This document shows, piece after piece, positions 6,888 through 18,606 of a stretch of 64,000 nucleotides of DNA. The notes under the pieces were generated by a model that worked only from the letters and a program-made list of their open reading frames with translations, was not told the origin of the DNA and did no database searches. Made by a program: the position numbers and the translations under genes. Within the stretch, counting starts at the first letter, position 1, and every line of letters begins with the position of its first letter. The stretch is from NCBI GenBank assembly GCA_033442325.1, contig JAWQFM010000007.1:1840567-1904566 (forward strand), given 5' to 3'. The stretch is from Salpingoeca rosetta. Lineage: Eukaryota > Protista > Choanoflagellata.

Positions 6888-7528
6888 TACCTGTGTCTCC
6901 ACATGTGTGTGTGTGTCTGTGTGTAGGTTCATGTTTCCATGTGTACATGTGTGCGTTGGGTCACTGCCGCTGTTGTCCTTGTCGTCCTCTCCTCTTCACC
7001 TCCCCGCCCCCCCCCCCACACACACACACACGCACCATTGCTAGTTCCTTCACTTGTGACATTCACGTTTGATTTTGAGGGAGGGCTTTTTGTTAACGTG
7101 ACACGCAATGCAACAGAAACCAAAAGCAAGGTTCCCCTCCCAAACGAACCCCGCTGTCAACACACACACTCCCATCATCAACCAAATGATAAAAGAGGCA
7201 AGTTAAGAAAGCAAGACAGAAGGCGAAGCAAACAAGAGCAAAAGGAAAGACAAAAGGAAAGACAGAAAACATACACAATCATCGACCTTCTGCGTCACAA
7301 TGCATGTAACATGACGCGACATTAGGAATTGTAACACAACGAGCAGATCGGTAGGAAGTCAAGCAGTTGACAATCACAATCACAACCACAATCACACACA
7401 ATCTCACACACGCACAACCACAATCACACAACCGCAATCACACGCAATCACACAATCACAACCACAATCACAACCACAACCACAATCACAACCACAATCA
7501 CACAATCACAACCGTCCAAACAAAGCCC

Positions 7529-9377
7529 CTAAAGCGCGGGCTTCCTGAGCTGGAGGCCGCGGCAGATGTGGTTGCACTTGTGCGTCCTGAAGAAATCGCG
7601 AATGCCGCGGGCACCGCGATCGCCCGCACTGAACAGGCGTCCAAACTCCTTGTTCCTCGAGTCGTGCACCACAGGGTCTGTAAGGAAGATGCCCATCTCC
7701 GTGCATGTGCCCTGCAGGTCCACCACCATGAACCGGCCCCTGGTCCGCGCGTGCGTCCAGTGGCTGAACGCGTGCACCACCATGCCCTCCGGTGTGTCTG
7801 CATGGTTCACCTTGCCGGCGTTGTTCGAGTACTTGGTGTAGTTGCCGTTGATCATCTGCTTCTCCATCACCCAGCACCCGTTCAGGTCGCCCACCTCCAT
7901 GTGCGGCGCAAGCGCTCGCAGCGCCTCGTGGTAGCGGTGTGCGCCCTTCACCTCCACCAGGTTTGGCTTGGCAAACACCAGCTTCAACCTCTGCATCCCC
8001 GTGGCAATGCCCGCACGCTTCAACTCCTTCATAAACTCGAGGGCAAGCTTTTGCGCCACCGTCTGCTCGCGCATCTCCCCGAGACACAGCTCCCGCTCGC
8101 GCTGCGCAGGCACGATGAAGATGGGCCGCTTCACCACCACGAGCTTGGTGCTGCCGGACGCAAACAGCGCACGCGCGCGGTGCACAACACGGAACGTGCC
8201 CTTGTTGAAGGCAAGCGGGTACAACTGCATCCGACGCTTCGCACGCGTCTCCTCGGCAAACATGTCTGCCTTGAGGTTGGGCATGTTCGCGAAATCACAC
8301 TGCAGCTTCAGCGACGTCGTGGTGCACTCGGACATGGCCGGCACCGTGCCCCACATGATGGCACCGGGCTGCATGTCCACACGCCGCTGCCGCTGCGGCT
8401 GGTGCTGATGCTGGCGCGGGCGATGTGCAGCAGGGCCGCTGCCGAGGGACAGCTGCTTGTCAAAGTCCTCGGCGAGCTTTGTTGATGTGGAGATGCTTGA
8501 CGCCATGATCTGATGCAGGACCTGCAGCAGTGCCGCGGGCTCGCTCGTGTCCACCCACGTCATGCGCCGGCCCGTCGCGCTCGCACCCGCGTACGCAGCG
8601 TCAAACTCATCAAACATCTTGCGCGTGGAGAACGGGTGCTTGTCGCGTTCCTGCGGGTCCCTGATGCCGCCGAACACATACTCAATCTGCTCCTTGGCCA
8701 GCCACCGCACGAGCCCAAGCACACGCTCAGGGTCCTCGTCAGGGAAGCTGTCGACCAGGTCGTGGTAGAAGAGGCGGCCGTGGCACGGCGCATCGGCAAT
8801 GTGCAGCACAACGCGCGTGGCCTCGCGGCGAAACTCAAGGCGATCGTGCACGCACTGCAGGCCCGCGCGCACGTCCTCCACATAGTCGGCGCCGCCCTGG
8901 GGGTGCACCATCTTCAGGCGCAACAGAAACGCGTCCAGGTTGGGCGTAAAGTGCACAACTTCGGGCCGGTCGTCCGCCAGGTGTGTCTTGTCGCGGTAGG
9001 CAACGAGTGCAAACCGCACCGCGCCCGTGTCTTCGCCAGCGCCGTGCGTGGCGTGCAGCTCCTGTGCTGTGCGCTGCATGGCTGCCAGCACGCCCGCAAA
9101 GTACGGCTCCATGCCTCCGGTGGCATCGAGAAGGAAGCACACGTCCAGCTGCGTCCCGTGGAACAGCCCGCTCATGTGCGGCGCGGCGCCCTCATCTTCA
9201 ACGCCACCGCCACAGCCATCGCTGTTGTCGTCATCATCATCATCGTAGGGGTAGCTGCCCTTGCGTCCATCCACCAACGTGGCGGAGTCGCCGCTGTCAG
9301 CGCTGGTGCTCTTCCCGCCATGCACCATGGTGTGCATGTCCTCGTCACCTCCGCCCACGTGCACGGCCGTTGCCATG

Positions 9378-9409
<32 letters not shown>

Positions 9410-11194
9410 GGCAGCACCGTGGTTGCTGTAGGTGCTCTTCTTCGCCTGGGGTGCGCGGGTGAGGAAGCGCGGCACAGTCGCGGCGTTGCCCGCGTTGAGT
9501 GTGATGGCAAAGATGTTGACAAAGTCCTCGTACGTGAGGGACCGGTTCCCGTAGTGCTGCGTCATGCGTTGCTTGTACAGGCCCATGTTGTCGCCGTAGC
9601 GCATGCGCAGCTGGTCGGCCTCCCTCACAATGTCCATGAGCATGGTGCTAAGGGTGCGCCCCTTCTGCTGCATGGCTGTGCGTACGGCGCTGTGGTGCAT
9701 GTGCAGCTGCGTCGCGTCTCGCCCATACAGCGCCTGCACAAGCCGCCTCCACTGATCGTGCGAGAGGCCGTTCTTCTCCTTGTGGCCAAATGAGCACAGC
9801 AGAGCGCTGTGGTCGGAGGCTTTGGTGCAGTTGACGTACGGGTGGAAGAAGTTGCACGGCGTCTTGTGGTAGTGGCTGCGGTTTGGGCAGTAGCGCAGCA
9901 CCTGCCACACAGGACACGACGGTCGCTCATCTCGCTGGCCGTGACCACCGCCACCTCGACCACCACCTCGACCACCATTACCACGACCACCACCTCGACC
10001 ACCACCTCGACCACCATTACCACGACAACCACCTCGACCACCATTACCACGACCACCACCGCGACCACCACCGCGACCATGACCAACACCGCGATCGTCG
10101 ACGTCGTCATCTTCACCGTCACCATCGTCGTCGTCGTCGTGGACCACAACGTGAGGGCCGGGTGCACTCTTGAGCTTGATTGCAGGAAACCCGGCATCCA
10201 GGCATGCGCGGAACGCCAGTGCCTGGTACTCGTCAAAAGCCTCACGCTCGTCAAGGGCCTTCATGGTCTGCGCGGCCGTATTGCGTAGCATGTCCATGGC
10301 TTCACGGACAACGGTGATGAGGGTCGTGGTGACCTCCTCCTGCTCGTTCTGGGCAAGTTCCATAATCTCCGCAAACACGCGGTGGAAAGGCACGGCACGC
10401 ACAACGCGCTTGAGGTCGCTGCGCACATCTGGGTCGCTCTCGTATGCCACCAGGATAGACCGCTGGTACACCTCGTCGCCGTGCTCAAAGCGGCACCGGA
10501 TATCGTCGTGTTCTGGAAGCCGAGCACCCCAGCACGCGCCAAACACATACCAGATGCAGCACCACGCAGCGTCGGGCGCAGCCACACCACCTCCGGGCTG
10601 CACATGCTCCGCCGGCAGTGGCGGCGCACCATGCGGCAGCGGCGCAACACCAGAGTTGACACGGCTCACGGCCGCGGAGGCTACAGTCGACGCAATGGTC
10701 GCGTCGATGCCCGGGAGTACACCATAGGGCATGTGGACGATGGAACAGTATGTGCAGTAGCGCAGCGCGTTGTAGAAGTTTGCCCGTTTCTGGTTGTTCG
10801 TCTCCAGCTTGCGTCGGTGTTGGATGGCAAAATTGACAACGTCCTCAGCCTCTCGCTTCACGTAGAAGTCTTGCAGCACGAGGATGTCGATCAAGAAGTG
10901 GGCTGGCGTCTGGTTCTTCTCGTTGAGGAGCCGCCGGACGTGGGTGTTGGGCTGTGATTTGGAAATGGACGGCTGCTGGGCAGCAGCCTGCTTCAAGTCC
11001 TCGAAGGAAGGACGATACTTGCCATAGCGGTACGCGTGCGGCAGATACGCGCGAGCCTGCTCAAGCCACACGCCCTTGACTGCCGGATCGTGCAGATGGT
11101 GGCAGCGGTGGGTCCCCGTTTCTGCCTGTCCTGCGCAGAGCCCAAATGTCTTCCAAACAAAACACTGCTGCTTCTGAGGCATCTTCTGAGCCAT
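7529..11194 (-). CDS. Intronless alpha-kinase (eEF2K/MHCK family) with vWA domain, 3-4 CCCH-type zinc fingers and an RGG box
   Basis: Kinase motifs 'FNKGTFRVV', 'VVVKRP', 'KYSNNAG', 'HAFSHWT', 'MVVDLQG', 'LTDPVVH', 'HKCNHIC'. vWA motifs 'LDVCFLLDATGGM', 'FALVAYRD', 'GGADYVEDV', 'IADAPCHG'. CCCH motifs in the N-terminal half. First ATG at 11194. Confidence 0.92.
9940..10095 (-). repeat. Coding minisatellite encoding RGG/GRGNGG repeats
   Basis: 'ccacctcgaccaccattaccacgacca' units on the plus strand encode GRGGGRGGGRGNGG. Confidence 0.9.
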
Positions 11195-11871
11195 CTTTGC
11201 GTGCTTGCCTGTTCTCTGGTTCTCTTGGTTCCCTTCTGTGCGGGCTTTGGCGTCCTTTTTCTGTTTGCTTGTTGGCTTGTGCCTATTTTTCTGTCTCCTT
11301 TGGATCAAAGGGGCTGTTGTTGTTGTTGTCTCTGTGGACAGCTGCTGCGGACAGTCGCTTGTTTGTGTTGCTGTATCTGTCTGCTGATTTTGGTGTTGCC
11401 TTTTTTGTTGGCCGACGCGCGTGTGCTCACGTTGTTGTTGCGGGAATCAAGAGATGAATGTAAATGACTCCGTTTGCGGCCACTGCGCGGTACGTCGCTG
11501 GTTGGTTGTGTTGTGTCCGGCTCAGTCACAGCTGTGCGTCACTGGTGTCAGCGTGAGTAGAATCCGTGGTTGTGGGGTTGTGTGCGTAACTGGGCTGTGC
11601 TTGCTTCTTGATGTGGCTGCTTGACACATCGGTTTTGCGAATTGCTCTCCGCTGTCAGCTGTGCGCAATTTGCAAAGGGGGTGGGGCACGAAAACAAAAA
11701 AAAAAAAGTTGTGTGCGAAAACCAAAACACACACACCACACAGCGGAAAAAAAGTGTTGCTTTGCTTCTGTGCTTGTCCTCCCACAAAGACAGACCTTCT
11801 TGTTCGTCTCGACAACGACAACAACGATAAGAGAGGGAGGAGTGGAACGTGCACGCACCCACCACTAAGAC

Positions 11872-11953
<82 letters not shown>

Positions 11954-12082
11954 GCAACAACACTCTCTAGGACGGCAGAGTTGGAGGAAGATACCAGTAC
12001 AGGCGGGTGGTGATTTTGCCCGTCGTTGCCTGCTCGTCAACGTCAGCAGCGCCATTACATCAGCAGAACACATGCGTTCGCC

Positions 12083-18606
<6,524 letters not shown>

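Follow-up and report, generated by a model that had tools for sequence, protein, structure and literature searches.

Alpha-kinases are few, and each of their known accessory domains (ion channel, calmodulin, sugar sensor, WD repeats) defines a distinct biology. Here we analyse a gene for one such kinase in the choanoflagellate Salpingoeca rosetta, carried on the minus strand of a stretch of 64,000 nucleotides (assembly GCA_033442325.1, contig JAWQFM010000007.1, positions 1,840,567 to 1,904,566 of the forward strand) that we call the window and in which all coordinates below are counted. Its 1221-residue product joins a C-terminal vWA domain and alpha-kinase to an N-terminal half with three Cys3His knuckles and an Arg-Gly-Gly (RGG) box.

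The closest described architecture is that of the vWA-alpha-kinases, which fungi, oomycetes, Tetrahymena and Dictyostelium possess (PMC2827801, PMC3019232). The Dictyostelium member, VwkA, works at the contractile vacuole and affects the levels of myosin II (PMC2827801). As in that family, to which we liken the S. rosetta protein by architecture, the alpha-kinase forms the very C-terminus and the vWA domain precedes it, but among the relatives examined only the S. rosetta protein has an extra 600 N-terminal residues with three Cys3His knuckle modules and an RGG box. The kinase domains of eEF2K, ALPK1 and TRPM6/7 share its catalytic fold and residues, whereas their regulatory parts (calmodulin-binding and SEL1 regions, an ADP-heptose sensor, an ion channel) are all missing from it. 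That a zinc finger can bring a protein with a kinase fold to RNA has a precedent in Pan3, which is so recruited to mRNA (PMC4158885). Pan3, part of the Pan2-Pan3 deadenylase, is not homologous to the S. rosetta protein: it combines one canonical finger with an inactive pseudokinase of the conventional type, whereas the S. rosetta alpha-kinase is apparently active and its three knuckles are non-canonical. The likeness to PKR is one of idea only, namely nucleic-acid-binding modules placed N-terminal to a protein kinase, since the S. rosetta protein has no double-stranded-RNA-binding domain and belongs to a different branch of the kinase superfamily.

Our analysis leads us to favour, tentatively and at somewhat short of an even chance, the view that this is a lineage-specific VwkA-type kinase whose predicted RNA- or ribonucleoprotein (RNP)-binding head acts as a localisation or scaffold device, rather than as a proven allosteric RNA switch. 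Within reach of the searches made, such a predicted knuckle and RGG head on a vWA-alpha-kinase is unreported: the literature searched held no paper linking alpha-kinases with CCCH fingers and no published alpha-kinase tied to RNA-binding modules. The initial annotation knew of no such combination of modules. Neither CCCH-like knuckles nor an RGG box turned up in the 16 nearest relatives, in ESM Atlas clusters or in the literature; the vWA-alpha-kinase core is itself widespread. Were the kinase indeed tied to RNA, RNA and RNP biology would be added to the alpha-kinase family, in a genetically tractable choanoflagellate close to the animal root, and the knuckle-plus-helix repeat may be an undescribed long-loop variant of the CCCH finger. 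If the head is a lineage-specific appendage only, the protein is just another VwkA-type kinase.

A VwkA-type core with an apparently active alpha-kinase

The C-terminal ~540 residues (aa ~681-1217) are a VwkA-type vWA-alpha-kinase, a known and widespread architecture whose existence the initial annotation had rightly stated. A search of a large word-indexed library with aa 665-1221 returned 16 proteins from fungi (Sporothrix, Hyaloscypha, Polyplosphaeria) and metagenomes, nearly all of them with both VWA_4 (PF25106) and Alpha_kinase; the best match has 29% identity and spans 96% of the query (E 1e-34). ESM Atlas clusters that hold both domains come from ciliates, Mucoromycota, diatoms and green algae.

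Over the kinase, the Pfam profile Alpha_kinase (PF02816) matches from position 2 to position 185 of its 185 positions, with 144 bits against a cut-off of 21.3 (E 6e-42), and a PDB sequence search returned the Entamoeba alpha-kinase 4kuj (2e-18), the TRPM7 kinase 1ia9, eEF2K, ALPK1 and MHCK-A. In an alignment of 13 sequences every family-invariant kinase column is kept: R1002, K1022, E1111, K1121, N1125, D1159-L-Q1161-G and T1172-D1173-P. R1002, K1022, D1159, Q1161 and D1173, all in columns invariant or conserved among the 13, are in register with the TRPM7 kinase, and we take their roles to be those of their TRPM7 counterparts; the roles can also be read from K85, R69 and D223 of EhAK1 (PMC4192601). 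In the alignments with 1ia9 and 4kuj, the ligands of the zinc module in the C-lobe (H1145, H1205, C1207, C1211) fall on the SHWT and H-x-C-x3-C motifs. An AlphaFold model built on the same 13 sequences has predicted local distance difference test (pLDDT) values of 70-95 over the vWA and kinase domains, and Foldseek matches its kinase to 4kuj (E 2e-16), with template modelling scores, normalised by target, of 0.68-0.73 to 4kuj, 1ia9 and MHCK-A; eEF2K was also matched. The alpha-kinase thus looks intact, as the initial annotation had supposed, and judged by its residues and model it is apparently catalytically complete and active.

Only one further alpha-kinase locus was found in the genome (C12:1529986-1530642, minus strand, 79 bits). 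In place of the family's D-L-Q-G and L-T-D-P it has K-V-Q-G and Y-T-N-P, and for this reason it is probably a pseudokinase.

The vWA domain by itself stays below the Pfam cut-offs (VWA_4, 16.5 bits against 27; VWA, 14.1 bits against 23.8), so that its assignment rests on homologues and fold. Both bear it out. In the full-length alignment to the VWA_4-bearing relatives the invariant columns D684, F687, D690, T692, M695, G767-G768, D770, E773-D774, D801-A-P and H805 are kept, and Foldseek matches the model to the vWA folds of integrin beta (I-like), TFIIH p44 and Rpn10. Of the motif resembling a metal-ion-dependent adhesion site (MIDAS), D690-A-T692-G-G694, residues D690 and T692 are conserved among the 13 sequences, as is the GGxD/ED motif. 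The sole deviation from the family-invariant columns is Gly694 (nt 9113-9115): all 12 relatives have Ser here, the last residue of D-x-T-x-S, and the S. rosetta protein alone has Gly. This substitution may alter metal-dependent ligand binding by the vWA domain.

Some of the relatives carry a further element of their own. In five aligned fungal vWA-alpha-kinases the kinase is followed by a conserved Cys-rich tail (CCSNKLC ... WC-x2-CW ... ESQG, alignment columns 1100-1260), and three metagenomic relatives end in a different C-x-rich tail. These tails, for which we found no Pfam name, are possible zinc modules.

An N-terminal half of three repeats

The N-terminal 600 residues are made of three copies of one module, a Cys3His knuckle followed by a helical stretch (Table 1). 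Pairwise local alignments of the three segments lie 5.3-6.6 standard deviations above shuffles, and the regions that follow the knuckles, some 100-150 residues each and helical in the models, share the motif L-[IM]-D-[IV]-V...REAxDxLR. Between copies 2 and 3 lie the RGG box and an Asp tract, and an acidic, Gly-rich linker (aa 596-680) separates the third copy from the vWA domain. We thus recover on one 1221-residue reading frame, at the same coordinates, everything the initial annotation had listed: CCCH-like fingers, an RGG box, a vWA domain and an alpha-kinase.

Relatives of the N-terminal half were found neither in the organism's own genome nor by word search, by phmmer against 1.84 billion representatives, in metagenomes (JGI) or, with the alignment of the repeats as query, among viral contigs. 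However, these searches never returned the query itself, the exact protein is absent from the 15-billion collection, and the libraries probably lack choanoflagellate proteomes; since the libraries do not hold this protein, the blank is weak and says little about other choanoflagellates. Sequence and profile searches of the PDB with the N-terminal half gave only insignificant matches (the fingers of MBNL and ZC3H12A), and a word search over the whole length was uninformative, being swamped by poly-Asp and RGG words.

Table 1. Features of the gene and its product, with positions in the window
Feature	Position	Strand	Basis
Transcribed region, single-exon mRNA; 3' untranslated region (UTR) ~330 nt, 5' UTR ~380 nt	7197..11575	minus	stranded RNA-seq
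Coding sequence, 1221 aa plus stop	7529..11194	minus	single uninterrupted open reading frame, GC periodicity by codon position
Repeat module 1 (aa 5-200), knuckle 1 plus helical region	10595..11182	minus	local alignment against shuffles, z 5.3-5.8
Knuckle 1 (aa 11-35), C-x2-W-x5-C-x10-C-x3-H	11090..11164	minus	sequence
Repeat module 2 (aa 207-350)	10145..10576	minus	local alignment, repeat alignment
Knuckle 2 (aa 212-238), C-x2-W-x5-C-x12-C-x3-H	10481..10561	minus	sequence
Acidic Asp-rich tract (aa 353-367)	10094..10138	minus	sequence
RGG box (aa 368-417)	9944..10093	minus	7 RGG and 11 RG in 50 residues, 64% Gly
Repeat module 3 (aa 421-595)	9410..9934	minus	local alignment; helices predicted at low confidence
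Knuckle 3 (aa 427-451), C-x2-W-x5-C-x10-C-x3-H, plus extra half-finger C456-x10-C467-x3-H471	9782..9916	minus	sequence
Acidic/Gly-rich linker (aa 596-680), poly-Asp runs aa 596-606 (11 residues) and 651-656	9155..9409	minus	pLDDT ~30
vWA domain (aa ~681-917)	8444..9154	minus	invariant columns, pLDDT 70-90, fold matches
Alpha-kinase domain (fold aa ~954-1217; Pfam match aa 998-1211)	7544..8335	minus	Pfam, PDB alignments, fold
Hexamer-based microsatellite (ACAACC/ACAATC)n in 3' UTR, just past the stop codon	7370..7513		tandem-repeat detection

Likeness of the knuckles to CCCH fingers

How close do the knuckles come to CCCH zinc fingers? C, W, C, C and H are invariant across all three (the first spacing of knuckle 2 being x8 when counted from C212 and x7 from C213), and the first 600 residues contain five matches to a loose CCCH-like pattern, against 0.013 expected from 20,000 shuffles. 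As a comparison set we used nine genuine zf-CCCH matches from the same genome. With these the knuckles share an aromatic residue at Cys1+3 (3 of 3, always Trp), Gly at Cys2-2 (2 of 3) and an aromatic residue or His at Cys3+2. When the two small profiles are aligned with hhalign, Cys2, Cys3 and His fall in register with a single 5-residue insertion (P 6e-4), and the score of 17.3 compares with a mean of 8.1 +/- 2.0 for column-shuffled profiles and was reached by one of 300 shuffles. The nearest named clusters in the ESM Atlas are mostly zf-CCCH families, with scores of 0.75-0.79 which, being below 0.9, are leads only. The extra half-finger (aa 455-474) matches zf-CCCH_AtC3H23 with E 0.0067 and 16.6 bits, below the cut-off of 27.

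The knuckles thus resemble, with moderate support, the CCCH fingers of the same genome. Compared with well-known fingers (TIS11d/TTP, MBNL, ZC3H12A), they have the same Cys-Cys-Cys-His order ending in C-x3-H and the same aromatic and Gly positions, but the loop between Cys2 and Cys3 has 10-12 residues instead of 4-6, Pfam does not match them, and the helical region that comes after each of them is specific to this protein. We read them as likely divergent, long-loop members of the CCCH type.

Proposed tethering of the kinase to RNA or RNP

What could such a head do for an alpha-kinase? In the model that we favour, the knuckles and the RGG box would bind RNA or RNP components, possibly nucleolar ones, and this binding would tether or concentrate the kinase on such particles. 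There the vWA domain might dock a protein partner or substrate, while the Asp tracts that adjoin the RGG box could mask it until nucleic acid or a partner competes. We infer the tethering from what CCCH fingers and RGG boxes do elsewhere. Positions that the knuckles share with CCCH fingers stack on RNA bases in the latter, and three knuckles together with an RGG box are a typical make-up of RNA-binding proteins.

Several observations weigh against this model. No match of knuckles 1-3 to Pfam zf-CCCH appears even at E <= 10. In place of the canonical spacing C-x7-8-C-x4-6-C-x3-H the knuckles have C-x8-C-x10/12-C-x3-H; to our knowledge no definition of the CCCH finger allows so long a distance between Cys2 and Cys3, which at 10-12 exceeds those we know of by 5-7 residues, and the spacing in this notation was not found in the literature searched. 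Of the initial annotation's "CCCH-like" fingers, therefore, the hallmark positions and a moderate profile likeness survive, but a Pfam match and a canonical Cys2-Cys3 spacing do not. The hhalign probability is only 28%. AlphaFold run on aa 1-350 without an alignment gave an unusable pLDDT of 35, and module 3 stays below 50 in the larger model. The searches described above yielded no orthologue in which conservation of the Cys and His ligands could be seen. What codes for the RGG box is a young-looking 39-nt tandem repeat (3.4 copies, 87% matches), which could be a neutral expansion. Finally, CCCH fingers and RGG boxes can mediate protein contacts too.

Two of these observations also bear on a possible, if somewhat less probable, explanation: that this is an ordinary VwkA-type kinase whose head is a lineage-specific protein-interaction or structural zinc module without any role in RNA, the RGG box being a low-complexity tract born of slippage. 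Besides the failure of Pfam to recognise the knuckles and the tandem-repeat origin of the RGG box, the relatives are in its favour, for their N-terminal extensions are very different: a CCCH domain is absent from all ten of the nearest vWA-alpha-kinases that were scanned, and what they carry is coiled-coil-like, SAM or Sel1. Moreover, the described work of Dictyostelium VwkA concerns the contractile vacuole and myosin II, not RNA (PMC2827801). Against this explanation, the knuckles retain the positions with which CCCH fingers stack on RNA bases, all but one of the 300 shuffles fall short of their profile similarity to genuine fingers, and the combination of three knuckles with an RGG box is, as noted, that of RNA-binding proteins.

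Integrity of the transcript and of its predicted long product

Tethering through the head presupposes that the long protein is made and that its N-terminal half matters. One could instead suppose that the first 600 residues are fast-evolving, largely disordered and of little function, or that the functional product is a shorter vWA-kinase from an internal start. We consider this unlikely, even though the N-terminal half has no homologue in any search and a low pLDDT, and even though RNA depth is 3-8x greater over the 3' half of the gene than over the 5' half.

The reading frame is well defined. Its start is the first in-frame ATG, at 11194, and it runs for 1221 codons to the stop codon at 7529-7531; an in-frame stop just above 11308 on the minus strand means that it cannot begin farther upstream, and no ATG occurs within the 386 nt upstream of the start codon. 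The GC content at codon positions 1, 2 and 3 (~0.6-0.7, 0.42 and 0.70-0.86) is uniform across all parts of the frame and this periodicity is missing from the flanks and UTRs, so that the 1800-nt open frame of the head shares its codon-position pattern with the kinase half. The three diverged, still recognisable repeats with their invariant Cys, Trp and His argue for constraint on the N-terminal half.

Expression was assessed from raw stranded RNA-seq reads of two runs (X21, X22). Coverage is continuous from 7197 to ~11575, with a depth of 4-43 in nearly every bin and the first mate on the plus strand, which in most stranded libraries means minus-strand RNA. Reads and molecules pile up at 7197, the likely 3' end, and an X12 contig ends at 11575. 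Up to ~11575 no internal cluster of transcript starts is seen, and libraries of this kind commonly show a 3' bias. Within the gene (7529-11194), no splice joint entered the table of RNA-seq joints. Continuous unspliced coverage and a single open frame thus point to a single-exon mRNA for the 1221-residue protein. The protein sequence is present letter for letter in the ESM Atlas, so that the gene model is already public.

Two joints, 9244/10119 and 10140/9227, were rejected as splicing. They link two tracts that code for poly-Asp, contain additional letters and are present in a probable DNA run as well, and we read them as repeat cross-mapping between the poly-Asp tracts.

Possible regulation of the kinase by RNA

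A bolder version of the RNA model goes beyond tethering. Here the modules and the RGG box would read the state of RNA or RNP, the Asp tracts would mimic nucleic acid and the kinase would phosphorylate RNP or translation factors, making of the protein an alpha-kinase whose activity or location RNA controls. It would be a counterpart of PKR that responds to stress or infection, built on another kind of kinase and using an undescribed long-loop CCCH-plus-helix module. We hold this to be improbable, about as much so as a dispensable N-terminal half. Least probable of all is a PKR-like switch proper, which the initial annotation had put forward as a possibility and in which RNA on the N-terminal half would allosterically activate the kinase and bring about translation shutdown (e.g. 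through eEF2) or an infection signal, since a Pfam scan found neither a double-stranded-RNA-binding domain nor an eIF2-alpha-kinase domain, CCCH fingers usually bind the cell's own single-stranded transcripts, and the core lies in the vWA branch of the family, not with eEF2K or ALPK1. It is suggested only by the presence of RNA-binding-type modules beside an intact kinase and by the analogy with eEF2K, which controls elongation, and ALPK1, a sensor kinase (PMC2827801; PDB entries).

Gene surroundings

While the S. rosetta genome is intron-rich, this 3.7-kb coding sequence has no intron, whereas the adjacent gene is spliced. A retrogene-like or otherwise unusual origin is possible, and searches of the organism's own genome found no parent copy. 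The adjacent gene (plus strand, 11725-12700) is transcribed divergently, ~150 bp from the 5' end of the kinase gene (gap 11575-11725), a spacing which suggests a shared promoter region. It has a GT..AG intron at 12137-12344 and, at ~11860-11970, a long CAG/CAA tract that reads as poly-Gln in the plus-strand frame. At the other end of the kinase gene, the words of the 3' UTR microsatellite reach, in the runs, hundreds of times the depth of the flanks, which indicates a dispersed repeat family with many loci; T>C variants were seen at 7468 and 7486.

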